Positions 2,375-56,708 of a stretch of DNA of 64,000 nt are shown here, piece by piece. A program made the translations under genes and the position numbers. The notes beneath the pieces are model-generated. The model saw only the letters and a program-made list of their open reading frames with translations, was not told where the DNA came from and did not search any database. How positions within the stretch are numbered: the first letter of the stretch is position 1; the number at the start of each line of letters is the position of its first letter. Source of the DNA: Podarcis melisellensis (Eukaryota). The stretch lies in the NCBI GenBank assembly GCA_964234715.1, contig OZ174286.1. One strand, given 5' to 3'.

Positions 2375-2627
2375 ATTGAGTTCTATAATTATTAAGCATA
2401 AAGGTTCTATATAGGTTAACGTGAGCCAGACATTTGCATATCCTCAGGGCACTGAGTGACCATGTGCCTCAATAGTTGTATAAGAAATAAAATAATGTCA
2501 TATATTTTAAAGAAACCATTCATTTGAGCTCTGTTCTTTAGATAGATGCTTTTAGTTTGTGAGAGATATTTTCAAGAAAGGCAATTTGCCAAACTACAGC
2601 TAATATTTGTAAAATATTTCTTTGTAG

Positions 2628-2747
2628 AGATGGCTTTGAAACAACTATATGACAAAAAGAAAGTGTTTTTGGAAAATCTGAGAACAAATTTTAGAGAACT
2701 GCAAGAAGCCCAGGTTCTTGCAGCTGCCGAGCCAGGTGGTATCAGTG
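2628..2747 (+). CDS. CCDC7-like exon a (120 nt, phase 1-1): MALKQLYDKKKVFLENLRTNFRELQEAQVLAAAEPGGIS
   Basis: tttgtag / gtaagt. Confidence 0.85.
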
Positions 2748-5700
2748 GTAAGTATTTTACTGGGCAATCCAAGTCATGGGAATGTGTCAAACAGCTCAGC
2801 TGCCAGTGATCCACCAACATAATAACCACAGCATCCAAACAGCATTTGGTGGAGTAGTCACTAGCACAATATGCCTATGACTGTATGATATCCACATGCT
2901 GCTCTCTGTTGCTTCTGCTCAGCCTCCAGCCAACTCTGCCCCTCCAGTCCACCCTCTCATTACTGTTGTAACTTTCTATTTATTCTCTGCACACTTCCTT
3001 CCTGCCCAGTATACTGCCAAAACACTCCTCTCTCTACCACTACTATGTCCTGGCAACCACTACTGCACACAGGCACTGTTGTCGGAGTCCATTATCGTCC
3101 TTGTCACTCCTTGAACTTTGACTCCTACTTGTTTGCTGTCTGGTTCCCCACCCTTTGGTCACCCCAAGTTGAGCTACCCTTCCACTGGTGTTGTGCCAGG
3201 CAGCCTAACCTCAACTGCTGAGCCAAGGTTTCTCTCCCTCCCTTGCTGCCTGTGAACCTTCCCATCCCTGAGTTAAGCCATGAGAACAAGTGATTGATGT
3301 TTTGGTATTTTTTCAAATTGAACTGAATAAAGGTTGCAACACAAGTATTGTGCAACAACCACCTCCCATGTTCACTTACTCCACAAAGAGAAGCAGATAC
3401 TAGTGTGCTCCCAATTGTACATTGGCAACGGAAAGTAGGTTTCCATTCTACTATCCATCAGCTGGTATGTAGGACCTTGGATCTAAGTAATCCTTTCTGG
3501 CAATAGTTCAATAATTCTCTGTGTGGCTTACAGTTCCTTTTACTGCACAGTTACCACTATACTTTTCTCATCTGTTATGCCTAATGCCTAAATTATTCAA
3601 TCTATAATCTACATCCTTTTCAAAAAATACTGTGTGACGGTTAAAGAGTAAAAATACTTATATTCAAAAGGCAAAAACTACATTTTGGTATATCTCATCT
3701 TTTATGTTAGTGTAAAATAAATGCATTTTGAGTTATGTTATATTCCTTTTTGTAGAGCTAAAGGTACAAGAGCTCATTCAGCAAAGAAGACTTTTGACTG
3801 CAGGTTTAGATGCAATTATGCAAAGCATGAAAGAGATAGAAAATCTTATTGCAGGCAATGTGGAAGTAGCAAAACCCAGTGGTGAGTATGAAATTTAAAA
3901 AAGTCATCAGACATGCAATACTTCAGAATTCTATTTTCACCTAAGTAGTGTGTGATAGAATGATGTGCTCAAAAATGTTCATCTCAGCTCCATACTGGCA
4001 AAGCTCTCTGATATGGACAGGGCCAGTTGCACTCCATGAGGGCTGTTGCTTCTTTCACTGCATTCCTCCATGGAATCTTGTTGCCAGACTTCTGACATAG
4101 TTACAGCCCTTGACATCTGCCCACCATTACCAGTGGACACTTCCAATAAAACTGTGCTCAGCTCTATAGTCTTAACAGCAGTGCTAATTCCAGTAAGTTT
4201 GCTAGTCTATCCATATGTGTGAATGTACAGAGACCATGAATAAGAACAGGGTGACTGCCTGCAGTTGTAGTTCTGCAGTTGTTTGTGCAAACACACAACT
4301 CCTTCCCTCCTTCCCCACTGCAGATATTTAGTGTGCTTGAAGTTTATCATATGACTATTTTATAGGGCCACTATATTGGTCAAGAATTTGAGCTGTACCC
4401 CTGTTGCATCTGCATGGAAGGACATCTACTAAAAATCTAGTTTAGCAATCTTCCCAAATGCACAGAGTGCATGTGTGTATACAAACGACAACCTGTTACT
4501 ATTTATCTTTGTAGAAATTGAATTAGAGAAAATATATGAGAAAAGAACATTGCTTTTGGAAAACATGGAATTAAATCTGCAAGAGCTGAAAGACCTTGCA
4601 AAAGGTGGTGTAAGTGGTAAGTAAAGTGTTAAATTTTAGTATGTTGTGCATTCCTGCTATTGGGCATAGCTTGGGCACCTGCCACCCAATCAATAAAAAT
4701 CAATACAAATCTGAGGTTCTGCCTCCCCTAACAAAAGCCTGCCCCCACAACAAAAATCCTGGCTATGCCCATGTTCTGAGAGTTATAACCAGAGCAAATG
4801 TGAGACAGAAGTTGTGTATTCCTGCTCCGTAGAACTCTTTGTGTTTGAAGCCATATACATGTGACATTCACTGCAATTCATATCTATCCTGTAGAGCCTT
4901 TAGAAATACTGCTGTTTGATGCATTTTCCTTTAAACCAGTTTTCATAAAATGCACTTCTCAGTTAAACTGAGGTGTGTACATTTAAGACAGTCTGTTGAG
5001 TAGGCAATCTGGTACTGTGGTATTGATGCTATTGAGTACCACTTCCTAAGATAATGTTATTTTTTATTAATAATCTTTATTAATTTTCATGTTGTATGTC
5101 CAAACAAATGCTATAAAGAAAGAAAAATATGACCAATAACAGAAAAAGGACAATTGATCTTACTTGAATAGTAGATTTATTAGGTGGATGATAGGGTATT
5201 TGGATTAGGCTGTTCCTCTTGCATGAGACTCAGGCAGGATCAAAGTATTGTGGGAGGTTTTTCAGACTTCAGTTTTTTGGACTTGCCAAAAGCAGGAGCA
5301 TTTTCAGAAGAATCTAAAAACCAATTAAACATACGGCCTACATGGGTAGATCTTACTGATAACCCTTGAAAACCATGGCTCTTTGAATGGGAGGAATAAC
5401 TTGAAAGATTGTGAGAAGCAATAGATGACCACGCTGGGTTTAGATGCTTTGTCTTTTGTTTTACTTTCTTATGCGTAAAACTACTCAACCTCAGATATGC
5501 AGATGATACAACCTTGATGGCAGAAAGTGAAAAGGAATTAAAGAACCTTTTAATGAGGGTGAAAGAAGAGAGCGCAAAATATGGTCTGAAGCTCACCATC
5601 AAAAAACGAAGATCATGGCCACTGGGCCCATCACCTCCTGGCAAATAGAAGGGGAAGGAATGGAGGCAGTGAGAGATTTTACTTTCTTGGGCTCCATGAT

Positions 5701-8700
5701 CACTGCAGATGGTGACAACAGCCACAAAATTAAAAGACGCCTGCTCCTTGGGAGAAAGGCAATGGCAAACCTAGACAGCATCCTAAAAAGCAGAGACATC
5801 ACCTTGCCAACCAAGGTACGTATAGTTAAAGCCATGGTTTTCCCAATAGTGATGTATGGAAGTGAGAGCTGGACCATAAAGAAGGCTGATCGCCAAAGAA
5901 TTGATGCTTTTGAATTATGGTCTGGAGGAGACTCTTGAGAGTCCTATGGACTGCAAGAAGATCAAACGCATCCATTCTTAAGGAAATCAGCCCTGAGTGG
6001 TCACTGGAAGGACAGATTGTGCAGCTGAGGCTCCAATACTTTGGCCACCTCATGAGAAGAGAAGACTCCCTGGAAAAGACCCTGATGTTGGGAAAGATGG
6101 AGGGCACAAGGAGAAGGGGACAACAGAGGACGCGATGGTTGGACAGTGTTCTCGAAGCCACAAAACATGAGTCTGACCAAACTGCGGGAGGCAGTGGAAG
6201 ACAGGAATGCCTGGTGTGCTCTGGTCCATGGGGTCACAAAGAGTTGGACACGACTAAACGACTAAACAACAACAACAACTCAAGCCTTGCAGAAACTCTT
6301 GAGGAAACCATGAAGATTTTCCATTTGCCGTGAAAGCAGACTGCGGGAGGGAAATAAGCAGCTGAAGGGCACTGTTGATTTCAATATTACTGTTGGCAAG
6401 ATGTGCTGCAATAGTCCTTTGTGCCGCTGAAATGGACAGGACTCACTGACATCTCTCCTTTCCGCCACTGCTGCGGACAGGAGGAAGATGATTTAATGCT
6501 GTGTTTTCTGTTGACTTCTTTTTTTCCCAACCAGCAAAATCACAGTTGTTGAAGTAAAGCCGGTGTGCTGAATAAAAGGTCCAAAGGATGCTGAGGCAAA
6601 CACGCAGAGCGGCTGTTAGTTGACAAAGCGCATGGTTGTTGCATCAGGCAGCCCACGCCGCAAAAATCATTAACGAAAATGATCCAACCACTGAAACAGC
6701 AGCAACAAGAACATAAAAAACAAGAAAGGAACGAAGTAAAAAATAGAAGTAAAGCAACTGAACACAGAATAGCGAAAGACCTGTAGCAAGGAGAAAGAGT
6801 GTTTTGTTTTAACCTTGACGGAGGACACGTAAAAATTGTGGGATGTCTACCTCCCACAGTTCTTTGCTCCTCTCTGAGTCTCGTGCAGGAGGAACAGCCC
6901 AGTCTGAATACTTCATCACCCACTGTCATAAATGGAACAAATCAAGACAATGTTATTTTAAATTGTGTTTTGTTACATTTTTATTGATTTTTCTACATAC
7001 TCTTCATAAAGTCTCACATATAGCATGTACAGGACAACATTGCACAACCTTTAGAGATTTAGACAGCACTCTAGCCTATGTCTTCAAGCAGCTCATATAT
7101 ATTTATTTATATGGGCTTACCGCATCCAATTGCTTTTGATGCATAAAATCTTTGGCAATCTGTCATTTGGGTACTAATGATTTCTGTCCACCTCTTCTAT
7201 TAGATACTAAAATGAATTTGTACAATGTGGCTGGTAAAACTATTCTGCAGCTATCTGGGCACATGGCATTTAAATTTAGTCTCTTTCAGTGCAACGTGCC
7301 CTCTGTAACAGCACTGTTTTTTAAGTTTACTTTTGTAGAGAACAGTTCTAAAAATGTAATTAGTAACTATCTTTTATCCAGAGAAGAAAATACAGGTGAT
7401 AAGTGAGAAAAGAAACCGTTTGGTTTCTAGTTTTGAGGCAATTCTTCAAAATATGGAAGAAGCACTTAGGTTAGACCAAGGAGCAAGGACAAGACCTGAT
7501 GGTAAGTCCAAAACAAAATTCCATGGAAATGGTGCTTCAGAGACACTGTCACAATAACTTCTGATTGCAGTTTGCTTCCAACCTAGAGCATTTTGTTCTA
7601 CAATACCTTTTCTGAGGATAATGTTTATTGACAGTAAATGCTGTTGTCTCTTGATTTTACTGTTTTATCTTTCGTAAATCATTTTGAGGGTTTTTTTTAC
7701 AAGCGAGCAGGGTATAAATCTTTATTAAATATATAAATAAATACATAAATAAATATCTCTATCCTCACAATGAGAACACAATCCTGTTTTCATGCAAAAC
7801 CAACTGAAAGGATTACAGGTTGCAGTGGCGTAGCGTGGGGGGTGCAGGGGGGGCCGGCCGCACCGGGCGCAACATCTGGGGGTTAGGGTAAGGGGGCGCA
7901 AATCCACGGGTTAGGGGGCGCAAATTACTTGCCTTGCCCCAGGTGCTGACAACCCACGCTACGCCACTGACAGGTTGCATTTTCTGCTGTTCTTTTCTAT
8001 AGCTCTGAAAAATGCCAAATAGGACCTGCCACTTTATTCCATCCTGCTATTTCAGAATTCTATTTGCTACAGAATCTCAATGTTGTATGATTCCAGTTTT
8101 AAAGGAAATAATAAATATTAATAAATATTGCTTTCTGTTATTGAATATAACCATTTTTACATTTCCTAGAGAGAAATATAAGTGATCTCATAGAACTTTC
8201 CAATCTAGAATCAAAACTGGATGAGATGGAAAATTTAGGAGTTTTTTCAGGCTTTCAACTGGATACTATAAGTGAGTAAAGAATTAACACCTTGTATATA
8301 CAGTAGCATGTATTCCAAACTGGATTTAGGCTGAGGTTTGCCTTTTTTAAAAAACAACTGGTCTATAAAGAACACAATATAATTTCCTTAGTAGATAAAT
8401 GCAAAAACCACTATTATATATAACAAAACATCTTTAAAGACATTTTTTTTCTTCATTTAGTTCATTAACATCTATTTTATTTTGTTAGGGAAAAAAATGT
8501 GCAAACTAAAAGAACAAAAAAAGAAATTGATTAGTAAATGGGAAAAATATTTTCTAGAAGAGTATCCAGAAGGATATATACCTGAACGTAAGTACAAATA
8601 TGATTATATTATTGGGTTATTGGCAATTTTAATGTCTTATAATTAATTCCTGTCAAGTATTTTTGTTCACCTGTGAATGTTAGTCAAGAAACAGAATTTT

Positions 8701-11700
8701 AAATGCATTATAAACATGCAACACCAAATGACGCCAAAGGGTATTTTTCTTTTGTTATAACAATTTAATTTTTTGACTTATTTATAGTGTTTTTTCCTGT
8801 GTGTAGATCCACCTCTGGTCAATAATATTCTGCTTCTTCAGGTGTATCTGAAGAAGTGTGCATGCACACGAAAGCTCATACCAAATTCTGCTTCTTGTAA
8901 GCCAAGGATGGGGAACCTCCAGCCCACCAGGTATTTCTGGACTGCAGATCCCCATCATCCATGACAATTGGCTATGCTGATTAGGGCTGATAGGAGATAT
9001 AATCCTACCACCTTTGGAGGGCCACAGGTTTTCTCATTCCTGTTGTAATCATTCTTTTCCATCCTCTTTCCAACCTAGTTTACTGTAACTGTACTAAAAA
9101 TGTTCAGTGCTGTCTTTCTAGAAAAAGAGGTTCTGGAACTCACCATGAACACATCCCTTGTTCCATTATAATGACAATGGCACCCATCTGAGAGGTGCTG
9201 GAACTGAGTTCCAATGAGTTCTAGCTGAAAAAAGCCCTGAGAATGTTCAACACAACTACACATGTCTTCAACTTTGGGGCATTGCCTTTTTTAATTCCCT
9301 GCTACCAGCTTGCAGATATAACATGTAAATGTATTGTGATAGAAGGTGAGCTATCGTGATTTACTAATCATTATTACCTGTTAGTTTTTCTTCCCTTCCT
9401 TACCATGCTTCCAGCTGCTTACTACCTCCTCGCTGCCATGGGGAAGCCCCACCCCATAGCTTCTCATAGTAACTGTATCTTGGGATTCCTTTGAAGCAGC
9501 TCTCTTCAGCATTCCCTCTCCTACCTCCTTGTGCTGACTTACCTGATGGAATGCACACATTCACCATAACTTCTGTAAGTTAATAGGTGCCAGGTGAAAG
9601 CACTCCTCTTCTCTCAGGCCTTTGGGCAAATTAAACTATCTGCGGCTTTTAAATGTGTGTGGGGGGGTATTGTTTGGTTTGCATTTTTGTGGTTTTACAC
9701 TGTACACCAGGGTGTATGGGATGTTAGGGGAGGGGTAGTACCTTTGGTAGGGGAATCATCGTGCTCCTTCTGGGGTAGTTTGACCACCTTTGTCCCCCAC
9801 CCTGCACTCAGCTCTCACCTGTGGCTCATAGAAGCTGTCAGCATGCAACAGCAGCCACACCCTGGGAAGGGCTTTGACTGGCTGGCTAAACCAGATGAGA
9901 GTAGTAAATGGCCTCAAACCATTGTTGAATTAGGAACTTTCCATGCATGTGAAGGCAGGCTCTTGTGGATTGAGTAGTTGAGACCAATTGTGGATACAAC
10001 AGTCAAGAAAGCAGCTTCTGCACAAGCTGTAGAGGGAAGTGAGGAGCAGGTGGGGCTCATCAACTTGGGAAAGTAGCCCATCTAGGAGAAGGAAAACTCT
10101 GATCCTAAACCTCTACTGCCTTCCAGGATATATTTGGGAGAAGAAACAGCTAAGGAGTAAACCTTACACAAATCAGGAGTGTAGGCTCTAAGATGGTTGG
10201 ATGGTGCCTTGTATGCCTTCTTCTGGCAGCTCCTGCTGCCCAGCTGGTGCCAAACACATTGCTCTGCTTTCCTTTAGACCACATCAGTGAGGCTGAGAGG
10301 AAGGTTTTGTCACCTGGGCAGCCTAGGACCGCCATGCACACTGCCCAGGTTTGAGCATTGGGAAGGTCACTTCAGAGCTGCTAATGCAGTAATTTGACTT
10401 CACCTCTGGAGATGCACTCCACTGTCTCTTGAGACAAATGGGTGCCAGCAATACTGTAAGCCACTGTGTGATCCTTGGACAAATGATTGTATGTAAATTT
10501 AATAAATAAAATAATAAATAAAAATACTTACCTTACACAAAAGTACTGTGCCTTCCCCGAAAAGCTATATCCTTCCTGACGTTCAAAACCTCTTCATTCT
10601 TTTATCTTTATTTTCAAAGGCCCAGTCTACATATTACATCTATCACAGAGAAATGTCAACAGATGATGGTGATAAGTTGTTAACGTATACAAAACACCAT
10701 TAATGTTGAAGGTGTTTTACAGAGTACAAAAGGTCACATGCCTACCACAATGGCATCACAATCTAAAATTCAACATGGAATACAAATGAAGAAGGGAGGA
10801 GGGAGTGGAGATGGGAGAAACATGGGAAGAATGTGTCATTATAGTAGTTACATGTAATTAGACTTAGTTACAGCATGGTATGTGAACTAGGGCAACCTCA
10901 TGGATACAGTGGCAGTTGAGGATAGGTTTTAGGTCAAAAGATTGGTTCTGGGAGGCAATTCTAGACATATGGCACAGCATGTGAGAAAAGTCAAAATTGT
11001 TTAAGAGAGCAGGGAACCTTTGGATAATTGAGAGTGGAGAAGCTCTGTAGCACTGGTGAACATGTACTACTTTCTCATCACATGGAGTGCCTCTGTGGCA
11101 GTGCCTTATGCTTTTGGATGGGATGGCACTGGCACAAAGTTTTATTTATTTATGATTAGTATTTGTTTAATTTATATCCCACTCTTCCTCCCCAAAGGAG
11201 CCCAAGGCTCTTGCCTCATGTGAAGTTAAATTAAATTTTCCACTAAAGGTTTGCTTTTGTTTTTGAAGCCACCAAAAAAGACAAAACACCCAAAGGATTA
11301 GCTGGAAAAGGTTTGTTCTCATATTTGCGATCAAGTATCAAAGATCTGCAAGAACAAGGCATTATTCGGCAAGATAGCATGTCTGGTAAGTATTGTAGTC
11401 AAACTTTCTGTGTTTCTTTGAGTTTTCTGAACAGATAGACTAGGGCAGGCTAGGGCTAGACTAGGGCAGATAGACTAGGGCAGTGCATGGGTTGCATTAA
11501 AGCTCCAAAGAGCTTTTGTGGTCCTTCTATAATGCTGACAAAATTTGTCATTTTAAATAATAAAAATAGTTGTTGCAGTTGTTAAAAAAAAAATCTTCTT
11601 ATTGCGTCTACGGGATCCCAGCTGTGATGCCAGCCTTCAGAGGGCTCTCAGCACCAATAGGCCACTCTGCTATCACATGGGCACACGCAAGCCACCTCAT

Positions 11701-14700
11701 TATGGGGGCAGTGCTGCTTTTTTCCTCTTTCCTCTGCTGCCTCCATTCTCCTCCTTTCCCTCTGCCCCTCTTAATTTTTTTAAAAATGTTCATTACCACC
11801 ATGTCAGCCCCATTTGCTAGACACTTGGACTTTGAGAGAAGGCCAAAGGCAGGGGTGGCACGTTCCATTTCAGTGCTCTGAAAATGTATAAAACATTTAT
11901 TTTCTGCCTTCTTGGTCTCCCTTTCTTTCTGCTGTTCTTCTAGTTTTATTTTAACCTGCTATTACAACGAAGGTGTGCAAATTAGTTTTTGCTTTTTTGG
12001 GGGGAGGGTTCCATAGTCAGGAAGCCATAACTGAAGTTTCAATCATCCCAATCCCACTTAAAGGATGCTAGGGACTTGGGTTTGATTTATTGGGTCTCTT
12101 AAATTTGTGTGTGTTGGTGCTTTATTGTACACCTGTACATCTTTTCTGTACACCTGAGTGAAATTTGAGCTAGGTACAATTAGTTATTATTTATTTATTA
12201 CCCACCCTTAAGTCCATAAAGTAAGTATATTTTTCAATAAAAACTGAAAAGTAGACTGCTCAGAAGTTTTTAAACTTAAAATCACAAAATCATAGAATGG
12301 TAGAGTTGGAAGGTACCTGAGGATCATCTAGTCCAACCCCCTGCAATGCATGAAAATGCAGCTGTCCCATATGGGGATCGAACCTGCAACCCTGGTGTTA
12401 TCAGCAACATGCTCTAACAGGCTATCCAGGAATAAATTCAAATTATTTTTCTTAGAGGTAGAATTGGATCAGCTAGCAAAAGAAAAAAGAACTGTGGACA
12501 GATATTTTGAAGAAGTTCCAATAGAATTCCTGCCTTCAGAGGTTGCTGCTTTAAGTACACAATATGAGGGTGAGTGGGAAGAATATAATATAGTAGGATT
12601 AACATATCTGATGGTATTGTTTAACAAAATCCAAGAACTTATACAGAATTGTTTGACCCAAGGATATAACTGGGGGTTTTTTCTGAATGAGGAGCAGTCA
12701 CAGGAATAAGACTTGTAATATATTGTAATATTACAGTACATTGTAATAATAATCTTTGCAGAACAAAACCCCCAGAAAAGGGTTGTTAATATATTCCACA
12801 AAATGTGGTAAAGATCACTGGTTTAGAGCTTAGATAGTTTTAAAGGATCGAGGAAAGAATGAATAAATATATTCACCTACATATTCCTGAGCTCCTGATT
12901 ATTAATATGTAACAAGTAGCAAACTCTTTCATTACGATCAGCAAGGGTGAAGTCTCTTTTGCAGGAAGCATTAGCACCAGTAGCCCTCCTCTCAAATTAC
13001 ATACTGCATTTACTTTAGCCCATGGAATTCATTGGTTGTCAGACTCAGAACCAGATGTATCATTAGGCAGAATAAGACAACCATTTCAGGTGACAGATAC
13101 TTTGGGGGAGGGGTGAGAACACGGATGCAGCAATGCCCTAGCTGTCCTCTTCTGTTGGTGCGTGGCTTTGGAATGACCTGCTGCATCATTGTGTAACCAA
13201 AAATCATGGTGAGACAAATTGCTGTTTTATCAAGGAACTAATGCTTGATTCTTATTACGTCTGAGCAATCTGAGCTGAACAAATTTATATTCCAAACCAG
13301 GTTATGTTGTCATCATGTCTAACTTGGCGTTCGAAGAAAATACAGTCGTACCTTGGAAGTCAAACGGAATCCGTTCCGGAAGTCTGTTTGACTTCCGAAA
13401 CGTTTGGAAACCAAAGTGCGGCTTCTGATTGGATGCAGGAAGCTCCCACAGCCAATTGGAAGCCGCAGAGGCCCTGTTGGATGTTCAGCTTCCAAAAGAA
13501 CGTTAGAAAACTGGAACACTCACTTTCGGTTTTCGATTGTTTGGGAGCCAGAAAGTCTGACTCCCAAGGTGTTCGGGAGCTGAGGTACATCTGTACTGGA
13601 GGCTAGCAACCCAATGATTCTATGCAGTTTTCTACTTTTATGAAAAATAGAGCTAGTGAATAGGTATTACGGTCCAGTCGACTCTCATCTTTTGTGCAAG
13701 TTATGTTCTAGGGATAGCATGTAAAGCCAAAATGACATATAGTCAAAACAGCCCTTTAAACACCAGAAAATGGCTTGTAAAAAGCACAGTGCAGCATTTA
13801 CTGGTTCCTGGTGACTGCATTACTTAGTCTGTGCACTCTCTAACTGTACTTCTAAACACTCTCTCTGCACCTCTGAACACTCCCAAGGTGAGTGCAATGA
13901 AGGGTGGGATTGCTGATGTTTTCCCTGCAATACCCACCCACCCCCTTTTCCCCAGCCAAGCACGTAAAGCTGAATTCACACCAGTTTAATGTGCATAAGT
14001 TGAGAGTCAGCTTTGTAAGAAATCTAACATTCTTTATCTGGTGGAATTGCATGCAGAATGTGTTTGACATGTACTGGGTCCACCTTCAGAAAATTTTCAA
14101 AACTTGTACACTTTTTTGTTTTGTGTAACTGCAATTTACTCTACTACTTCTGGCTGTGGCTTTCAGAGACTCTGAAATATAGATAAGCCCCTGTGATCCT
14201 ATATAGTTCCTGTGATTAAGTATACATATTTTATTTGTTTTATCTTATAGATGAGAAATCATTAAAACGAAGGGCTTTGGCTGCAAAATTGGAGGCAAAT
14301 ATAAGAGATCTTCAATCTGCTCTTCAAGTAGATAAACTAGAAAAACCTAAATTTGAGAGTGAGTGCAAAGGCAAATTATATAGCAGACACATCTTTTGCT
14401 CAGAAAATAGTTAATTACACAGTCTTTTGTCCAGGGCTTTTTTCAGCTGGAACTCACTGGAACCCTTCTGGCCCCTCCCAGTTCTGGCCCCTCCCAGTTC
14501 TGGCCCCTCCCAGTTCTGGCCCCTCCCAGGTGTGTACCATTGCCTTTATAAGAGAACAAGGAAAGCACCTTTTTCTAGAAAAAATACACTGCTTTTGTCA
14601 ACCAATAGATAAAACTATAAAACATGGTTAAACGATGTCCCACAGTCATCAGAGTGTTGGATCAGTTGCAACAGGAAACCATCTATGTCAGCCCTTAAAT

Positions 14701-17700: not shown

Positions 17701-20700
17701 AAGGAAGAACAAAATAAAAAAGTTGAAATGTAATAGTAGAGAGGTATTAAGTGGCTAGCTGTTTTTAGTCAAGGTTTAATGGGTCTATCTTGATTGAACA
17801 TCACGAGTGACTTCCTCCTGCCTCTCAACTCTTTCATTTTCAGCATCTTATTTACTTTGTCTTTTCTTTTGGGAAGGATTCCACATCCTGGGGATTGGAT
17901 GGGGGATCAGTTAATCTCTTCAGTGCTACAATGAAGCAACTGGAGGTCACATGCAGCAGCCCAAACCCAAGATGTGGTGTGGTATCCTGTGGCCACAATG
18001 GCTCTCACCATATGAATCTGTATTGCTATGATATCAAGTATTTAAATTCTCCACAGCAGGGTTAATCTACAAGTGGAATATTCAACTGCTGCAAGGGACT
18101 GCAAGTTTTGCAACATGGTTGTGTTTTTTAGGGGGACGGGAATTGTATATTGGACCTATTTCATCTTATTCTCTCCATAACATGCAAATAATCTCTCTCA
18201 GTACCAAAAAGCGTTTTACGGACAACAGGCAAACGGAGACTTAGTTCACTTGAGCCATCAGATCAGCTCGCATTGAGACCACAACTTTCAGGGCTGCAGA
18301 TACACATAAGTAAAGTACCTGGTAAGTACAAAACGTGTTATCTAAAGTATCGTGTGTGCTTCCAAGGATGCTCCTTATACTGTGCATTATTTGATATGGT
18401 TACTGAGGACCCGAATGAGGACCCGTGACGGTGGCAGGAGAGCAAAGAACTCTGGGAACTCTAATCTTCTCTGTCAGCTAAGTGTTTTTATCTTCAACAA
18501 CACTTTATTTTTACTTCTTTACTCTTCCCTCCTATATCCTTTCACTTTCTAGTATTGTGTGTATGTCCATTTTCAAACTTTACTCCTTTGTTTTCTTTCC
18601 TCCGCTGAGGTTAAATAAATAAAAACACACACACACAAAAAAACCCCCACCCCTCCTGCTTCCCGTTTTGCTTTTGCTTTCCCTTCTCATTTCCTTGTTT
18701 CCTCTATTTGACTGCAGGCAAGGCATTTTGTTGTTGTTGTTTTACTACTGATTATTTTGGATCCTTGAAGTGCCAATGGTTTTTCTATCATGCAACCATT
18801 GGCCTTCTCAACTGTCCTCTTCCATTACCGGCTCCTTAGCAACGGTTGCTGCCTCGTTCCCGTTGTGCGATTCCTCAGCAGCGTGTTCTGCTTTGCACAC
18901 AGTTGCCTGTTTATAACAGCTGGTGCCTGGCAAAACATTACATTTCACAAAAGGGTGGGATATTATGCAGTTGCAACAAAAGAATAAGGAGAATGTTGTT
19001 TGTGATGATGATATACTCTCAGATGTTTTTCCCTAGAACAAACATTGAAGGCAGGTTGAAAGATTAATAATGAGACAAGGAGTGCATCATCAAATTTCTT
19101 GCTTCATTTGGTTCTAATTGTCCATTTGAAATATATATATATTAGAATGCATTACTAGGTGTGTTTTTAAGTTTGCTTTATTTGCTATGTATAAATATTA
19201 TTGTGTTGCCTTGAATGTCTATTTTGATATGAGTAGAGGAATATAAATGTGAAAAGTTTATTTACACATTAAACAATATAACATATTCAGAAAATTAGCA
19301 TGATCTTACTGAAAGTGGTTAAAAGTGTCTTGTATAAAAGTAATATGAAATTGCAAGGCTGCAGTCAAGGATTTTTGTTGTTTTTGTTTTTATCTTTCAC
19401 TTAGTGATTAGTTTGATTGAAGCTGGACATTTAGGTTCATGAAACAGAGTGCATGTTTGTAATATGCCTGTTCACTCTGAACTCACACTTATGAAATCTA
19501 TGCTTGGGCACAGCTAGCTTCAGAAATTTCTAGAATGTAGGCAAAGTTATTGATGTTTAACCTTCTCTCACACAAAGGAGAGGTACTTATGCCTTAAGAG
19601 GTGGGGGTTTTGCCTTCCTTCTTCTCAAGCCTCTTCAAGCCACTGTGTGGACAGATACCATGGGGTATTGCAGTTATTGAGGTCACTGGCAACTATGTCA
19701 CAGCCACTAAATGTCAGATAGGAGACCAGATGGATCTAGTCGAGAAAACTATCAAAGGGGGAGGAACCTGGTAGAGAAAATAAGAAGAGACAATGGCTGC
19801 AGCAGTGGTTCAGTTCAGAATGACCATTTTGCAGACATGGAGCACTCTATCCCATGTTCTCTCCTCTCTGGATAAATTATCCTGCTATCAGCATTATGAA
19901 CAGTGTAGACTATCGTCTTGGGACAAACCTGATATGGTGCAGTAGACCAATTCATCCTAGACAGATTATTCAAAGTGCCCATTATCATGATAGTAGAAAT
20001 TATTCAGATGTCCAGGAGAATAAGCCCTCTGGTGGAGATTGTAGTTAATTGAACAGCAAAATTATTGTTGCTCCTTACGTTTAGTCAGAATTTCCTTTCT
20101 TGTAACTTGAATTCATTGATTTGGGACTTATCCTCCAGAGCAGGAGAAAACAAGCTTGCTCCATCTGCGATATGACAGCCCTTTAGATATTTGAGGATGG
20201 CTATCATATCTCCTCTCAGTCTCCTCTTTAACTGGCTATATTGCTTTGATATATTCCAATAATCTTGTCACAGTGGATAATCTAGAGAAGAACCTTGCCT
20301 ATAATTTGTATAATGTAATTCCAACCCCCACCTGTGGAGCCAAAAATGAAAGCCTATACAGGTAGAGAGATAACAGAGACTGAACTGAGGAAGAAGATTT
20401 GAAGATGTTTGTTTAATATTTGTAGGCTGGTAGATCTTTTGTGAATATAGTTCACTGGAGAGATCCCCTCTGCTATCACGTTGGTTTTTCAAATTACTTG
20501 AGCAATTTTCTATTTTTAATGCAGTTCCATTAGTTAAGGCTCTGTTTGGCGTCTGCTGCTTTCAAAGTTATCAGCTGGATGATTGCCTGAGGGAGCAGAA
20601 CAGTCTTCACTGCTTTTTGGATACACATCTGTAAATTACACTGAGCTATGGGTTACAACTCAGTTGCTTTGGACTGGTACTATAAATAAGTCAAAGGACA

Positions 20701-23700
20701 GCTTACCTATCAGGATCCAGCTGACTATAGTAGAAAATCATTTTTCATGTATGGAGAAAACTTATTTGTGTCAACAGTTAACTTTATGTATGAATATTTT
20801 CCTCCCCATTGTGCAATGGGAACATATAGTGGCAAACAGAATCAAGCGTGATAGCAAAACAGTAGATGCAGGATACGATACGACAGTCCAGGAGGAGCAA
20901 GACCAACTTCTAAGTAAGTCTTATACATGCTTACCATGCTCCCATGTAAAATGGGACACTGTTGAAAATCAACTTTAAGGAGGTAATGCACATTTAACCA
21001 TAGCCTTTATTTTGACAAGGTATTAACTCCACCCTTTAAAACATTTATATCATTAGGATAATATTGGGTTGAGGAATTTTTGAATCTGATGGGTGGTGGT
21101 TGAACCTTTTAGATAAACCACCATGTGCAGTCCCTTCTACAACATGCACAAGATCAGTGGGTATAAGAAAATCTACTGCATCCTGCTGCTAAAATTATGT
21201 GTGCACATGGTACTTACTCCAGCCAACAGAATCTCAAGCATATAGAAGGCACATAGTCCTGATATCACCTGGTGGGGATTTGGTACTGACAGCACTGTGG
21301 GAAACTTAAACATTTCCAAGGTAAATTATTAACTGTGCTGTTGAAGGACCACATATTTTGACAGAGAACAAATATTCAAGAAAATATGAAATAACATATC
21401 CATTAGTCATGCAAATATTACTGTGCAGTTTAAACCTTATTTTATAGATTAAAAACAAATTACTTGGTATCTTGTATTCTTTGCAATTTATTGGTTGTGA
21501 ACTGTCAGTTGTTAGGCTTTATATTAATAAGCCCTTTTCTGTGTCTGTCTTTGCAGAGAGGGACATAGAACTGGCATTAAAAGGACGGCATCTGGAAGAA
21601 TTTCCAGAGAGCAAAGTATCTTTGCCACAATTGGATAGTTCTTCTTACCTTCATGCAAATTCACATAGACTTGCTTGTAAGTAATGATTAGTATACATGA
21701 TGGGATATGGGCTTGATGAGTGAGTAAAATATGGGGTCCTGATTTAGGTAGAGAACAATAGAGTATTAAGACCAGTCAACAGACAACCTGCCAGACAAGT
21801 GTAGATTAAAGCATTTTATTATTTAGCAAGAAAAATTTGACAAACATCCTCCTCATACTACCAAAGCTTAAACATTTAAAAGGAGAAGACATTTTTACAA
21901 CTCTGGAGGTGGAACCTCTCAGTCAGAAGAGCTTAAGACATACATTTCATAGTTTCAAAGCTTCTCTAGACCTTGGCTTGATGATGCCAAACTTTTAGTT
22001 TTCAAGTTTGGATCTCACCTCAACCAATCAGATTCTGCTGATGGTGCAGAACTGGCTAACCTCTCCTATTTTTATGTCTTAGTCTGCTTGTTAAGACCCT
22101 TGCCTCCATCTGATTACTTAACATACCATATTTCATATCCTGTCCAGAAAAATATAACAAACACTTCTAACTTCACTAGATCAATTTGAAATTCATCCTT
22201 CCCCCTTTCCAGAAGCATTTAATCACCAGACAAGCTGAAACTTTCAATACCATTCACAAATTTGGTAAATGTAAAAGCCTAAAAGCAGTTAGCAAAGATT
22301 ACCCACCTGCAGTTTTGGATAGTGGATATGCAAGAAAAAATAAATGTTTTTAGAATGTTTTTTGAATTAAGTAAACAATTTGTTTTGTTTCAGTGGAGGC
22401 TGCAATGCAAGAAATATTAGAGTTTAACAAGAATTTACTTCCAAGCCATAGAACAAACCTGCAACAAGCATTGCATCTTGCAAGTTATCAGTTACAACAA
22501 AAACAGCTACAACAACAACATCAAGCCAATGCGCTTGGTAAGGAATGGGTTAATTGTGTACAAATATGGCATTCAGACTCTTTGTTACATTTCCATTTAC
22601 CCTGTGAGTATGCTGTTATCATGAATTATTTGATTATTTTAATCAAATTTCTGTGCAAATATTTTAAATTACTTACATCTTTTTTTTTTTTAAAAAAAAC
22701 CACTTTAAAGTAACTTTTCCTGATTATTTGAACTGGTGTCTTCCTGAATACACCCTTGCATCTCATTGCAATGTGATTTTTAAAATTTCTAAGTTATTTT
22801 TTAAAACAGAGATGTTAAGATGTCTTGATGTTAAGATGTTAAACAGAGATGTCTTGATTTCTCACTGTATTTTATTCCTCCCATCTCCATTTAAATATTG
22901 TCCTATGTCTTAGAATGCATTACTTTCAAAGACCACCCAGTGCATTCATAATCATGATGATACCTCCCTCTAGATCAGTAAGCTTTTCATAGGAAGGGGT
23001 GGGGGGTGCCCTGTTCTCCAGACTGAATCTGCCTGGTGCGCAGTAGAGTCTTTTCAAGCTCCCAAGAGCTTGACTTTTCTGAGCTTCTTATCCCTCACCA
23101 GCCCAACACATCCTTAACATGGATGAGAGGCCATTTACATAGGGATGGGAGGGGGCAACTGTTGATCCACAACTTGAGTGAAAGCTTTGTATTTTCATGG
23201 CTTGGGGCAGATACATGGATTGGGCTGTGTGTGACAGCATAGTTACAGAAAGACAAACTGTGGCAAGATGCTCAGGCCTGCTGCAGCCTTCTCAAGTACT
23301 GCTGCCATAATAAAGACAAGACACAGCAACACTGAATAGAAGGGCTGTTTTAGTGTTCGTCCATTTCACTCCTATCCATATAGGGAAGGCAAGGGCCAGG
23401 GCCAGAGAGACACCATCTCCTCAAGGAACAAGTTCTATGATGGCACACTTTCTAGCATTCATGGAAAGACCAGAAACCTGCAATGAGATGAGCCAGAGGT
23501 GCAGATCTTTGGGGCACTAAATTCATGTGAAGTGGGGGACATGAGACACAATTTCATTCTGCCAACACTACTTCCTTTTTAGTTTATGGGGTTTATCCAA
23601 TGGAATGGGTGTTCACCCTGTCACGAGAAACTAGACAGGAGCAGACTTGTGGCAAGTAGGCTGGACTCCCTCAGTTTTTCCTCCTGTCTAGACACAGACA

Positions 23701-26700
23701 GTACATTCCTCCTGGCTCTCCTGACTCAGCTAGGTTTTTTACTAGTTTCTGAACCCCCCTTTTTTCTTTTGGTTTTCCTTATCGTCATTTTTGTTTTACA
23801 GTTCTTTGTCCGCATGTTGTGGTTTCTTCCACACAAAAAAACTTTCTGTTGCTCTGTACGTTTGGTTGTTCTGCTTATTTGCCACCCTTCTTTTATTCCT
23901 TAGTTGTTTACTTACATTACTTATAGATAAATTTTCCAGAACGGTTGCCCTTGCCGTGGCGCCAATGGTCATTCAGGCATGGCAGCCCTCTTTTGGTGCA
24001 CTCTATTTCTTTCCCTCAGCAGCCTCAATGGCTGCCACCATTTATCTTGGGTCAGAACTGTATTTATTTATTTTGTTGGTGTGTGTGGTTGTGTCCTACT
24101 TGTGTGACTGGTAGTGTGGCGTTTGCGTTCTCCTGCCCTGATTTAAAAATGGCTTGGCCAGCTCCTCCTGGTTTGCTTTTTTTTACACCGGCAATGGAGT
24201 GAGTGTTCCTATTATGTCCCTGCCTGACTGCTTCTATTTGCCTTTAATATTGAGCCCTGACTGCCTCCTGGTTCACTTTGGAGGCGACAGTGCCTGCCCC
24301 TCATCGTTATCCTCCTGGTTGGCAGCTGTGACAAGGAGTGTGTGTGTAGCTGCTGTTTTCCTCCACTCTCAGTCCACGGTGTGGCAAACAGTGTGTGGTT
24401 TGGCATAAGGCTTTTGCCTGCCTCTTTTCTCCTGATCCATGGAGTGCAAACCTTTGGGGCTGAATTTCTATAATCTTCCTCTTAACGATAAGAACAACAA
24501 ACATTATCTTCCCAAAACAGGAGATGTAGAACACCATTGCTGTTCATTACTGTAGCTGGAAACCTGAAATGCTAACCGGAATATATGGCTAGATGTCACA
24601 CATTTTTTTTCCATTTAAAAAAACTATTATTTTTTGCTTTCTTAGGCTTGCTTTTCATTAGAATTATTGGATTGTTCTGTCTCTCATACAGACTGTTTTG
24701 TGTTTTAATTTTCAGCTGACAAGTTCAGAAATATGCCATTATTTCCCCCACCACCACCTGGGACAGCTAGGTTCCAGGACTATACTATACCTGTTCAAAA
24801 ATCAGGTAACCTATAAAGTTGGCTGTATAAAAAAAATATCCCAATTTGGGGGGGGAGTGTATCTCATTCATACTGTAGGTTGCATTTGTTCTAGTATAAA
24901 CCATGTTTGATAGTAATGTTCCAAGGGAAGGGCATGTTCAAGGTGTTATACAAACAATTACAACAGAACTTAATTCATAAAATCTCTGAACAAAATCCTA
25001 GCATTCCTAGCTGAAAATATACTCCTCAAGTGTCAAAAGTCAGGGTAAAGTAGTGGATCATGGCATGCTGTACAATTAAGGTACCAGACACACCTCTGTG
25101 GGGACGGAGTCCCGCAATTTGTGGACCACCACAGAGAATGCCTTCTCCTGAGCAAGCACCTCATGAGGGTTTATAGGGAAAGAAGCAGTCTTTCAACTAC
25201 TATTTGGGGCCTGAGTCATTTAAGGCTTTAAACACTAATGTGAGCACTTTAAATCAACCCAGGAAACAAGCTGGTTCACAGTGCAGCTGTTTTAATACAT
25301 GGGCTATATGAGATCTAAATGAAACCAGTCAGTAATTTTGCTGCTGCATTTTAGACCACTTAAAGTTTCCAAGTCATATTCAAGGGCAACCTCATGTAGA
25401 ATGCTTTGCAATTATCCAATCTGCAAGTTAACGTGTTAGCCAATTGCCCTGTTAAATTTATTGTCCCATGCTGCCTCAGAAACTAATAAGGGAGGGAAAT
25501 CATTTGACTTGATAAAGAAGATTCTTTTTGCTTTCGATCAGTGGTTCCCAACTTTTTTTGGCCATGCCCCACCTAAGCATCTCTAAAATCCTGATTCCCA
25601 CCCCACCCCGTGACACATACCGCTAATTCTTATTATTCCAAAAGTATACTCCTATGCACATGGAGGAAGCCTAAAAGGCCATTAGCTTGGTCTAAACAAG
25701 CTTCAAAATTGCCCCCCTTAAAAATCAAATTGCCCCCCTGTGAGGCATGTGCACCACTTTGGGAACCACAGCTTTAGATTTATTAGGGAATGGCAGACTG
25801 TGTCTCTGTAGTCTACTTGATACATTTATGCATTCATAGTCTCTCTCACACTGTAGTCACCAAAAATTGTTATATAAACTGTTTCCATAAAAGTGATTAT
25901 AATTATTTTTGATCAGTTACAAAGACATTCCTGTATTCAAAACAACATTGTGTTTTTATATATTTCCTATGCAGGATGGGAAACAAACCAGTTACCACAA
26001 AAAGACTACCTCCAAAAGCTTGCATTATTAAAACGAAAGATTTTGGGGCCAGAGATGAAAGGTAACGAATCTCAGTGGAAAAGGGTTCTATATTCACTTT
26101 GGATTTAAGAGGGCAGGTTATCTTCTAAAATTCCTACAAAATGTCAAGGGAGGAGAAAATGTCTCTGTGTGGGTTGGCAGAATGGAAACCTCATACCACT
26201 GAAAGGCAAGAAATTTCTGGCAGCTGCAATTTCTATACTGCACTTTGCAGGGCAGTTTACAATATAAAAACACCAGAATACATAACATAGTAATAAACAG
26301 AAACAATACCTCCACCTACTTTAAAAGGCCATAGAGTGTTTAGTTAGCCAAAGGCCTGGAAGAAGAGGAATGCTTTTGCCTGTGCAAAATGAAGGCTCCT
26401 CAGATGATGATCCTGTTAGATTTGTAAGTCAGTTGGCCCATAACCTGTTAGACTTAGACCATCTCACACTCCTGCCAAACTGCTGCTGAATCTACTACAC
26501 ATACATATATTCCTTAGAAAAAGGGAGGGTGGATGAGGCATGCTTTAGGCTTGGACTGTCTCTAACAAGCAGACATGGGGGATGGGCTGCTCAATACATG
26601 GCCCAAGCAGTGCAATTTCACATTTTTCTCCAAATTACACGAACAGATTGCAGGATCCAGGCCAGTTCATATGGGGAGAGGTGATCCTTGAGGTATTGCA

Positions 26701-27623
26701 GTCCTGAGCCATTTAATACTTTATAGGTCAAAACCAGCATTTTGAATTTAGAAACTAATTGGTAGCCAGTGCAGTCAGGCCAGGATTGGTGCTATATACT
26801 CAACCTGCCTTGCCCTGGTGAGCAACCTGGCCACTGAATTCTGCACCAGCTGAAGTTTCTCATCTGTCTTCAGAGGTGGCCCCATATATAACACATTGCA
26901 ATAATATAATCTAGATGTTACCAGAACATACATGACAAGTGGCACTGCATTTGCAACATATGAAAATGTTAATTTTCATATTATGGCAAGTCAATTTAAT
27001 ACTATAAAAACTAACCCTTTCAAGTATACAGATAAAATTAATAAATATCAGGTAGACTTTCAAATGGTATGACAAAGTAATGTGGATTTTATTTTGTTTT
27101 GTTTTAATAGGGGGAGGTCCTTCATCAGTCACTCAGGGAGATGTTCAAGATCAAGTAGAGGTAAGTAACTATAGCTTACCCTAGAAAAATTAACATTTGT
27201 GAGATTAAGCCGGAGGACATTCCTTGGTAGGGATGACTCTTCCTATTGGGTCCTAAGAGCCTTTTCATCTTCTCTCCAAGAGGAGGAGTCCTTCCCATCA
27301 GACTGACCCTGCCTGTGGTCAATGAATCTGAAACTGATGAAACACAGATATTTTAGAGTTATCCTGTTAACAAAGCATTCAATTCACAATTGCAGCAGAG
27401 CATTCAGTTCACAACTGCAGCAGGCAACAGATAGCAAAATGAGATTTGCATATAGTAATCTAAAATGTAATCTTAAATATAGGTGGATTAACTCAGTTGT
27501 AAGTACCCTGAATAATTGTGTTTCATTTTTTAGGACCCAATTGTTATTTCTGGAAAAGGATGCAACCCCTACAGAAAAGAAACCACCTTCCCAGTCATAA
27601 AGCAAAGTTCAAAACATAAATGA
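2628..27623 (+). CDS. CCDC7: 3' part of multi-exon coiled-coil repeat protein gene (CCDC7-like), 17 exons, about 596 codons
   Basis: 17 AG/GT exons splice with no stop until TGA at 27621-27623. The name rests only on the known tail-to-tail CCDC7-ITGB1 arrangement in mammals, not on recognised sequence. Confidence 0.6.
3756..3881 (+). CDS. CCDC7-like exon b (126 nt): LKVQELIQQRRLLTAGLDAIMQSMKEIENLIAGNVEVAKPS
   Basis: tttgtag / gtgagt. Confidence 0.85.
4515..4616 (+). CDS. CCDC7-like exon c (102 nt): IELEKIYEKRTLLLENMELNLQELKDLAKGGVS
   Basis: tttgtag / gtaagt; similar to exon a. Confidence 0.85.
4661..4771. mobile_element. Small MITE
   Basis: 10-bp inverted ends tgggcatagc / gctatgccca. Confidence 0.55.
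5486..6279 (+). mobile_element. BovB (RTE clade) LINE, 5'-truncated and frameshifted
   Basis: NLRYADDTTLMAESE; KRRLLLGRKAMANLDSILKSRDITLPTKV; LQYFGHLMRR; (AAC)n tail. Confidence 0.95.
7382..7501 (+). CDS. CCDC7-like exon d (120 nt): KKIQVISEKRNRLVSSFEAILQNMEEALRLDQGARTRPD
   Basis: tatccag / gtaagt; similar to exon b. Confidence 0.85.
7823..7969. mobile_element. hAT-type MITE (young, CpG-rich)
   Basis: Perfect 17-bp TIR cagtggcgtagcgtggg; 8-bp TSD acaggttg. Confidence 0.9.
8170..8271 (+). CDS. CCDC7-like exon e (102 nt): RNISDLIELSNLESKLDEMENLGVFSGFQLDTI
   Basis: ttcctag / gtgagt. Confidence 0.8.
8489..8587 (+). CDS. CCDC7-like exon f (99 nt): KKMCKLKEQKKKLISKWEKYFLEEYPEGYIPE
   Basis: ttgttag / gtaagt. 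Confidence 0.8.
8844..8881 (+). ncRNA. Minimal type I hammerhead ribozyme motif of Penelope-like element type
   Basis: gtat-CTGAAGA-a-gtgtgcatgcacac-GAAA-gc-TC-atac. Confidence 0.6.
9105..9239. mobile_element. hAT MITE (same family as 14432-14591, opposite orientation)
   Basis: CAG...CTG ends; TSD aaaatgtt/agaatgtt. Confidence 0.75.
9705..10452 (+). mobile_element. Probable non-autonomous RTE-derived retroelement inserted in an L2-like 3' end
   Basis: actgta duplicated at both ends; no long ORF; RTE-like motifs recognised from memory. Confidence 0.45.
11269..11385 (+). CDS. CCDC7-like exon g (117 nt): TKKDKTPKGLAGKGLFSYLRSSIKDLQEQGIIRQDSMS
   Basis: tttgaag / gtaagt. Confidence 0.75.
12287..12350 (-). 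mobile_element. CR1 LINE 3' end fragment
   Basis: Reverse complement ends in ...ccattctatgatt, the CR1 tail. Confidence 0.75.
12456..12569 (+). CDS. CCDC7-like exon h (114 nt): VELDQLAKEKRTVDRYFEEVPIEFLPSEVAALSTQYE
   Basis: ttcttag / gtgagt. Confidence 0.8.
13343..13593. mobile_element. Tc1/mariner (Tigger-like) MITE
   Basis: TA-cagtcgtacct...aggtacatctg-TA; same family as 63387-63628. Confidence 0.8.
14251..14358 (+). CDS. CCDC7-like exon i (108 nt): EKSLKRRALAAKLEANIRDLQSALQVDKLEKPKFE
   Basis: cttatag / gtgagt. Confidence 0.8.
14432..14591. mobile_element. hAT MITE with internal 16-bp tandem repeat (ttctggcccctcccag x4)
   Basis: Perfect 8-bp TSD cttttgtc; CAG...CTG ends. Confidence 0.85.
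15282..16707 (+). pseudogene. Mariner transposase pseudogene (DD34D type)
   Basis: Stop at 15468-15470, frameshifts, about 380-bp insertion after VFWD. Confidence 0.9.
16730..17082 (+). mobile_element. Sauria SINE nested in the mariner 3' UTR
   Basis: tRNA-like A box (tggcgctgtagg) and B box (ggttcgaatccc); (ACCTTT)n tail. Confidence 0.9.
18202..18321 (+). CDS. CCDC7-like exon j (120 nt): PKSVLRTTGKRRLSSLEPSDQLALRPQLSGLQIHISKVP
   Basis: ctctcag / gtaagt. Confidence 0.75.
20050..20240 (-). mobile_element. CR1 LINE internal fragment
   Basis: Resembles the reverse complement of a CR1 ORF2 C-terminal region (LRGDMIAILKYLKGC). Confidence 0.6.
20830..20913 (+). CDS. CCDC7-like exon k (84 nt): ANRIKRDSKTVDAGYDTTVQEEQDQLL
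   Basis: Weak acceptor (catatag), gtaagt donor; phase fits. Confidence 0.6.
21557..21676 (+). CDS. CCDC7-like exon l (120 nt): RDIELALKGRHLEEFPESKVSLPQLDSSSYLHANSHRLA
   Basis: tttgcag / gtaagt. Confidence 0.8.
22394..22537 (+). CDS. CCDC7-like exon m (144 nt), Q-rich: EAAMQEILEF...QLQQKQLQQQHQANAL
   Basis: gtttcag / gtaagg. Confidence 0.8.
24716..24805 (+). CDS. CCDC7-like exon n (90 nt): DKFRNMPLFPPPPPGTARFQDYTIPVQKS
   Basis: ttttcag / gtaacc. Confidence 0.75.
25539..25771. mobile_element. hAT MITE
   Basis: cagtggttccca...tgggaaccacag; TSD ctttcgat/ctttagat. Confidence 0.8.
25975..26061 (+). CDS. CCDC7-like exon o (87 nt): WETNQLPQKDYLQKLALLKRKILGPEMK
   Basis: tatgcag / gtaacg. Confidence 0.75.
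27111..27160 (+). CDS. CCDC7-like exon p (50 nt, phase 1-0): GGPSSVTQGDVQDQVE
   Basis: ttaatag / GAG|gtaagt. Confidence 0.75.
27534..27623 (+). CDS. CCDC7-like last coding exon: DPIVISGKGCNPYRKETTFPVIKQSSKHK*
   Basis: tttttag acceptor; phase 0 matches exon p; TGA; candidate AATAAA at 28156-28161. Confidence 0.7.
   Translation, partial: DPIVISGKGCNPYRKETTFPVIKQSSKHK

Positions 27624-34069: not shown

Positions 34070-56708
<22,639 letters not shown>

Follow-up and report, generated by a model that had tools for sequence, protein, structure and literature searches.

A two-exon helical repeat in a putative lizard CCDC7 orthologue of Podarcis melisellensis

The window analysed here is a stretch of 64,000 nucleotides from the lizard Podarcis melisellensis (assembly GCA_964234715.1, contig OZ174286.1), in which nine short exons, named a to i, lie on the plus strand between positions 2628 and 14358. 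Judging from orthologue matches, this part of the window corresponds to the 3' end of the central array of repeats in the lizard orthologue of CCDC7, a member of the BioT2 family. An earlier note, made from the letters alone, had placed the nine exons here and described them as an alternating A/B array of coiled-coil repeats, one per exon; the placement was confirmed by splice sites, lengths, phase and, in part, by joints found in a contig assembled from a public read run (X1). The exons are listed below, with repeats numbered as in the CCDC7 protein of Lacerta agilis (P0062).

2628-2747, plus strand, exon a: 120 nt, phase 1-1; A-type, repeat 34, with a P-G-G-I-S turn at its 3' end; 90% identity to P0062 residues 2079-2118; joint in the X1 contig
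3756-3881, plus strand, exon b: 126 nt, phase 1-1; B-type, repeat 35; both joints in the X1 contig, joint b-c also in a second run (X5)
4515-4616, plus strand, exon c: 102 nt, phase 1-1; repeat 36, an A-type unit whose linker is shortened; 94% identity to P0062 residues 2161-2196; joints in the X1 contig
7382-7501, plus strand, exon d: 120 nt, phase 1-1; B-type, repeat 37; joints in the X1 contig, splice sites, orthologue match
8170-8271, plus strand, exon e: 102 nt, phase 1-1; probably a decayed repeat; joints in the X1 contig; hhalign P 1.6e-4, in register across the whole repeat profile
8489-8587, plus strand, exon f: 99 nt, phase 1-1; probably a decayed repeat; joint in the X1 contig; z 5.9 for the pair d-f; hhalign P 3.2e-4
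11269-11385, plus strand, exon g: 117 nt, phase 1-1; repeat core recognisable behind a basic lead-in; hhalign P 6e-8; matched by the end of the X1 contig
12456-12569, plus strand, exon h: 114 nt, phase 1-1; candidate repeat, at hhalign P 3.5e-3 only; splice sites, phase and orthologue matches
14251-14358, plus strand, exon i: 108 nt, phase 1-1; unit 40 in Lacerta and the last of the clear repeats; z 6.5 for the pair d-i; 97% identity to P0062 residues 2413-2448

All nine exons have an AG acceptor after a pyrimidine tract, a GT(A/G)AGT donor and a length divisible by 3. The phase is 1-1 in nine of nine, with two bases of a split codon at the start and one at the end. A 56-residue fragment from the gene calls (P0013) is 97.6% identical to exon b. 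Public read runs were compared with positions 2600-8599 of the window. The contig of run X1, 3511 nt long at a depth of 483, carries few substitutions relative to the window and therefore comes from a close relative. It omits the introns 2747/3756, 3881/4515, 4616/7382, 7501/8170 and 8271/8489, all of which have GT..AG ends; joints b-c and d-e are also present in run X5. The 30 contig letters that follow position 8587 match 11269-11298 with 3 mismatches, by which the start of exon g is fixed. Exon a starts at contig position 1634, so that at least 1.6 kb of transcript lie 5' of it, and the 30 contig letters preceding exon a were not found anywhere in the window.

The kinship of the exons was evaluated by judging Smith-Waterman scores of their peptides against 1000 composition-matched shuffles. 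The alignments of a with c and of b with d, proposed in the earlier note, were clearly recovered (z 9.2 and 8.1). Further pairs were scored at z 6.5 (d-i), 5.9 (d-f), 4.8 (g-i), 4.7 (c-d) and 4.0 (b-c), and a-b (z 1.4) and a-d (z 0.1) were at chance level. At the DNA level a and c are 63% identical (z 9.5) and b and d 66% (z 9.9), with cross-type pairs at chance. The 60-nt intron flanks of a/c and b/d show no similarity past the splice consensus. The splice contexts quoted as shared, tttgtag and gtaagta, are indeed present, but are therefore generic splice signals and no evidence of duplication; of the quoted letters, only the exonic GGTGGTnnnAGTG is part of the repeat.

Exons e to i had been described as more decayed copies, in an array degenerating toward the C-terminus. 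The orthologue alignment of each exon was compared with the repeat profile by a profile-profile method (hhalign), with six tail exons as controls. P values were 4e-11 for i, 6e-8 for g, 1.6e-4 for e, 3.2e-4 for f and 3.5e-3 for h, against 0.01-0.7 for the controls. By this comparison g and i are clear repeats, e and f probable ones and h a mere candidate. Degeneration toward the C-terminus is also seen when units are mapped along the array. Scanning all six frames of the window with a profile of five exons detected no further units on either side.

The reading frame of exon h is open for about 100 nt upstream of its acceptor (12350-12455). In the Lacerta agilis RefSeq model the acceptor lies about 97 nt further upstream and the stretch is coding, at 93% identity; the Zootoca model begins at the 12456 acceptor. 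The stretch could reflect an alternative acceptor or exonised repeat-derived sequence; it has no Pfam match, and no tRNA-like gene was found in it by ARAGORN.

The host gene was identified by searching the five-exon profile against 1.84 billion protein representatives. The search returned only 26 proteins, and every match with a named source is sauropsid; the best matches are 2100-2900 amino acids (aa) long and contain 25-41 matched stretches. BioT2 (PF15368) is located at the N-terminus of all full-length matched proteins (E 1e-23 to 1e-40 in P0001, P0002, P0005, P0062, P0010 and P0068), many of which are named CCDC7, and precomputed annotation places BioT2 on all 45 matched proteins. The N-terminus encoded together with the window's exons sits upstream of the window, and BioT2 was read in the orthologues to which the exons map. 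The RefSeq names of the matched proteins conflict, and include CCDC7, lava lamp, golgin A4, COP1-interactive protein, plectin-like, myosin-8-like, AKAP9 and MLP1; because of the repeat array, CCDC7 orthologues have received a dozen unrelated coiled-coil names.

Between 16 and 17 loci of the window match, in order, residues 2079-2709 of P0062 and the Zootoca protein P0055. This collinear match to annotated CCDC7 proteins, covering the C-terminal ~630 residues, has a mean identity of 77%, reaching 97%, and marks the window as lacertid DNA. Exon a corresponds to unit 34 of about 40 in Lacerta, and the window contains repeats 34-40 followed by the C-terminal tail. About 33 further repeats would thus be expected upstream of the window, which, with the 1.6 kb of transcript 5' of exon a, agrees with the suggestion that the array continues in that direction. 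In Lacerta the CCDC7 gene spans 158 kb.

An iterated hidden Markov model (HMM) of the repeat converged on a 28-position consensus, KLQELSEKRRLLLENLESNLKDLQEAQA, a single profile common to A and B. With this model, 25-45 units per protein were counted in squamates (full-length proteins, 14 species), 2-13 in turtles, 4-6 in alligator, 6 in ratites and 0 in six mammals. Going by these counts, squamates have multiplied the repeat far beyond turtles, crocodilians and birds. Mammalian CCDC7 revealed no repeat unit by HMM, BLASTP or hhalign. Among birds the repeat turned up only in palaeognaths (emu, rhea, kiwi); there was no neognath match, in a survey that included no search aimed at loss.

The A unit is 40 aa long, with K-K at positions 8-9 and, at its end, the conserved turn Q/E-P-G-S-x-S (Q-P-G-S-I-S), while the B unit measures 42-45 aa, with Q-R-R and a variable, Pro-containing end. 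Unit spacing alternates between 40 and 42 aa in Rhineura and Hemicordylus and between 40 and 45 aa in Pantherophis, and the 40/42 alternation is also found in turtles, alligator and ratites. In six species identity averages 0.41-0.53 for units at lag 2 and 0.24-0.29 for neighbours (lag 1), with peaks at even lags, and k-means clustering of 428 units gave two classes, in strict ABAB order in 14 squamates. The tandem duplication of a two-exon A/B unit, as originally suggested, is well supported by these data, which combine symmetric phases, one unit per exon and even-lag periodicity. In CCDC7 of the softshell turtle Pelodiscus sinensis (P0010), residues 871-1402 contain six near-identical 82-aa A+B dimers. 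Unless they stem from an error of assembly or annotation, these dimers are the product of a very recent amplification, independent of that in squamates, and direct evidence that duplication acts on the two-repeat unit.

Comparison of Lacerta with Rhineura gave 29 reciprocal-best repeats, perfectly collinear; against iguanians, snakes and geckos both ends of the array match one-to-one and the centre does not. The large array is therefore old within squamates, and has been kept position by position at least in Lacertoidea. Fifteen pieces were mapped at the Gekko kuhli locus (L001); 10 of them are exons of 120 or 126 nt that hold exactly one repeat each, and their boundaries are the same. Predicted isoforms in Pantherophis and Hemicordylus differ by exactly one A, one B, or e plus f, as expected since the exons are frame-neutral cassettes.

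Both unit types show a Fourier peak at 3.5 residues, over about four heptads, as is typical of a heptad coiled coil. Across 259 units, core positions 2, 5, 12, 16, 19/20 and 23 hold L, I, V, M or F at frequencies of 50-98%. Lys or Arg is conserved at a-position 9, and Pro and Gly are restricted to the linkers. The window and the X1 transcript differ by six substitutions, five of which change the amino acid; in this tiny sample, the pattern fits fast evolution at non-core positions.

The fold was predicted with AlphaFold. For a 792-aa fragment of Anolis sagrei, modelled from an alignment of 21 rows, the prediction is one helix of 28-36 residues for each repeat wherever the array is well formed. 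Confidence in the six-residue turn from A to B is moderate to good; predicted local distance difference test (pLDDT) values of the B-to-A linkers lie below 50, so that confidence oscillates at an 80-residue period. A kiwi B-A-B fragment, with helices at pLDDT 88-96, is modelled as a continuous B+A helix of 75 residues, a break at the A-to-B turn, and the next B. It superposes on antiparallel hairpins (CHMP4B, prefoldin, the seryl-tRNA synthetase arm) with root-mean-square deviations of 1.4-2.4 over 77-97 residues. The helix-linker-helix rod envisaged in the earlier note is thus supported as to one helix per exon, but the models suggest that A and B fold back on each other as an antiparallel hairpin rather than run on as a rod.

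These data can be combined in a single explanation, which is considered very probable: a lizard CCDC7 array, built by duplication of an A+B unit, for which a fold as a chain of hairpins and a role as a scaffold in germ cells are proposed more tentatively. Each phase 1-1 exon of 99-126 nt codes for one amphipathic, heptad-spaced helix of about 28-35 residues plus a short linker, and the A+B pair, 82-85 aa in two exons, is the unit duplicated in tandem. About three pairs are present in ratites and alligator, the softshell turtle made six near-identical ones independently, and squamates built arrays of 25-45 units. Because every exon is frame-neutral, gain, loss or skipping of units keeps the reading frame, so that the length of the helical region can evolve and can vary by splicing. 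Each A would pack with the following B as an antiparallel two-helix hairpin, so that the array might be a chain of about 20 hairpins, possibly serving male germ cells as an extended spacer or scaffold.

The last step draws on what has been reported for the gene in other species. Biot2 (CCDC7) is reported to be expressed in testis and tumours in mouse and human (PMC7838428), the BioT2 family of Pfam is named for spermatogenesis, and the literature naming both 'CCDC7' and 'sperm' includes sperm-proteome studies. A long helical spacer or scaffold of evolvable length, acting in male germ cells, would, tentatively, be the best reading of the array's role.

Several points weigh against this explanation. 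Testis expression comes from mammals only (the Pfam family name and PMC7838428), and function is not transferable from mammals, because mammalian CCDC7 is without a detectable repeat. The hairpin matches are generic: Z values of 10-11 are ordinary for helical models, and indicate geometry, not kinship. The hairpin packing is proposed from AlphaFold monomer models only, with predicted template modelling scores (pTM) of 0.27, for the Anolis fragment, and 0.40, and in the underlying alignments, shallow at 20-21 rows, repeats may be mis-registered. A mutual-information scan with average product correction (APC), performed on 202 A+B units, revealed no antiparallel contact pattern. Exons h and i and the tail exons, located outside the positions compared with reads, are without read support. 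Lastly, the labelling of run X1 as RNA is a guess, although a source other than RNA would hardly account for six canonical intron removals at such depth in a 74-Mb assembly.

The alternative that survives best, a less likely though serious one, retains the same exons and gene and differs in the packing: two chains would pair in parallel to form a long segmented dimeric coiled-coil rod, golgin- or myosin-like, interrupted every four heptads by a flexible linker. The clear 3.5-residue hydrophobic period in both unit types, the missing intramolecular A-B contacts in the covariation scan and the low overall pTM of the array model are all in its favour. Such a rod is less easily reconciled with Pro/Gly-containing breaks every 40 residues, with a conserved, short and confidently modelled A-to-B turn between arms of equal length, and with the kiwi model, which is a hairpin at pLDDT ~90. 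Moreover, although Foldseek found nothing significant for the 792-residue Anolis array model, the top-ranked rows came from helical bundles and repeat proteins rather than from long coiled coils. On these predictions the chain of A-turn-B hairpins is favoured over the parallel segmented dimer.

A more specific proposal, regarded as rather improbable, concerns the role of the array. The squamate expansion from about 6 to 25-45 helix exons would have produced a length-tunable hairpin chain, by which some sperm structure specific to lizards and snakes would be spaced or measured, as with a ruler; unit number together with cassette-exon splicing would set a physical dimension. Another sperm-tail gene of the same genome, QRICH2, also has a squamate-specific repeat domain, a hint that sperm scaffold proteins were remodelled more widely in squamates. 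Variation in array length is a testable candidate link to sperm morphology.

It is very unlikely that the repeat belongs to a catalogued family, such as spectrin, nebulin, an apolipoprotein-type repeat or another Pfam repeat. The names borrowed in RefSeq from golgin, plectin-like, AKAP9, lava lamp and myosin-8-like proteins might suggest so, but they conflict among orthologues of one gene. In Pfam only the N-terminal BioT2 is matched: single exons and the all-repeat proteins P0004 and P0008, searched at E up to 1, gave no match reaching the gathering score. The sub-threshold rows AAA_7 (E 0.14), DUF4653 (0.035) and Phycobilisome (0.19) were attributed to chance, that of DUF4653 disappearing on whole proteins. 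No relative of the repeat was found among PDB sequences, and exon a matched only weak unnamed clusters in the ESM Atlas. No description of the 40/42-aa unit was found in the literature, in a search to which subscription journals, InterPro, SMART and PROSITE were external. The repeat family, suspected to be undescribed from the outset, is therefore taken as new, although RefSeq already has predictions of its host proteins, named CCDC7 or given arbitrary coiled-coil names. The mode of building is known, tandem duplication of symmetric exons being a well-known route to repeat proteins.

The idea that A and B resemble each other through convergent coiled-coil composition of unrelated exons, with no duplicated unit, could appeal to the chance-level pairs a-b and a-d and to intron flanks common only in splice consensus, but is rejected as having next to no probability, since composition-matched shuffles are exceeded by z 8-9 in protein and DNA, the 40/42-aa lengths, phases and turn motif are conserved, lag identity and ABAB clustering reveal two regularly alternating classes, the shared 28-position profile retrieves only CCDC7 orthologues among the 1.84 billion proteins, and the Pelodiscus dimers are a duplication caught in the act.

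Comparison with known systems places the array among several partial analogues. Mammalian CCDC7/BioT2 shares the BioT2 domain and about 33% identity with the sauropsid proteins over the first ~420 residues, but is 930-1620 aa long, does not align past residue 420 and contains no repeat unit by HMM or profile-profile comparison. Nebulin is built of helical modules of 35 aa, most of them encoded by an exon of their own, which form super-repeats. The two systems have in common a helical module per frame-neutral exon, a higher-order duplication unit and a length that varies by exon number or splicing; there is, however, no sequence relation and no Pfam nebulin match, and the CCDC7 unit differs in measuring 40/42 aa, in having a heptad core and in its period, which is two instead of seven. 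No link to actin is known for the CCDC7 repeat. Olduvai (DUF1220) domains of the NBPF genes, each an exon doublet, are tandem-amplified, and likewise represent a lineage-specific tandem amplification of a two-exon unit within one gene. They differ in fold and sequence, in lineage (primates versus squamates), and in being a gene-family expansion versus a single-gene array. Among alpha-hairpins, the ESCRT-III core, prefoldin arms and the seryl-tRNA synthetase arm superpose on the kiwi A-turn-B model with Z ~10, but at 4-17% identity, and none of them is a tandem hairpin array. Spectrin and dystrophin are also rod-like tandems of helical units in which the last helix may run into the next, as in the 75-residue B+A helix of the kiwi model; CCDC7 has two helices in 82 aa as against three in ~106 aa, and no Pfam spectrin match.

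CCDC7 is a poorly understood gene, in which an uncatalogued repeat family is now defined. A profile of the unit would tidy the annotation of its orthologues, and the array offers a natural series for the duplication of frame-neutral exon pairs, from about 3 dimers in ratites and alligator, through 6 in the softshell turtle, to 12-22 position-conserved ones in squamates.

Downstream of exon i the gene continues into a C-terminal tail without repeats, whose exons were inferred, independently of reads, by tblastn of squamate CCDC7 proteins with splice and phase bookkeeping; one small exon was not located.

18202-27620, plus strand: C-terminal tail of CCDC7, without repeats
18202-18321, 20830-20913, 21557-21676, 22394-22537, 24716-24805 and 25975-26061, plus strand: inferred tail exons, phase 1-1, orthologue match
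27534-27620, plus strand: inferred last exon, orthologue match, stop codon at 27620

No similarity to the repeat profile was detected in the tail exons by hhalign. The six located between 18202 and 26061 are also all in phase 1-1, and measure 84-144 nt.

Interspersed repeats are found at 5400-6400, in the intron between c and d, and at 7800-8000, in the intron between d and e, where summed contig depth reaches ~1e5, in four of four runs. Open frames at 5615-6333 give the impression of the 3' part of a long interspersed nuclear element (LINE) ORF2; the repeat of the intron between c and d has no Pfam match.

About 10 kb downstream, an integrin beta gene is located on the minus strand (37538-48919), convergent with CCDC7. 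This is probably ITGB1, which presumably adjoins CCDC7 in human as well, an arrangement that, like the beta-1 identity, we assume here. Its exons encode cytoplasmic, tail, EGF and VWA domains, recognised by Pfam with E between 1e-10 and 1e-32.

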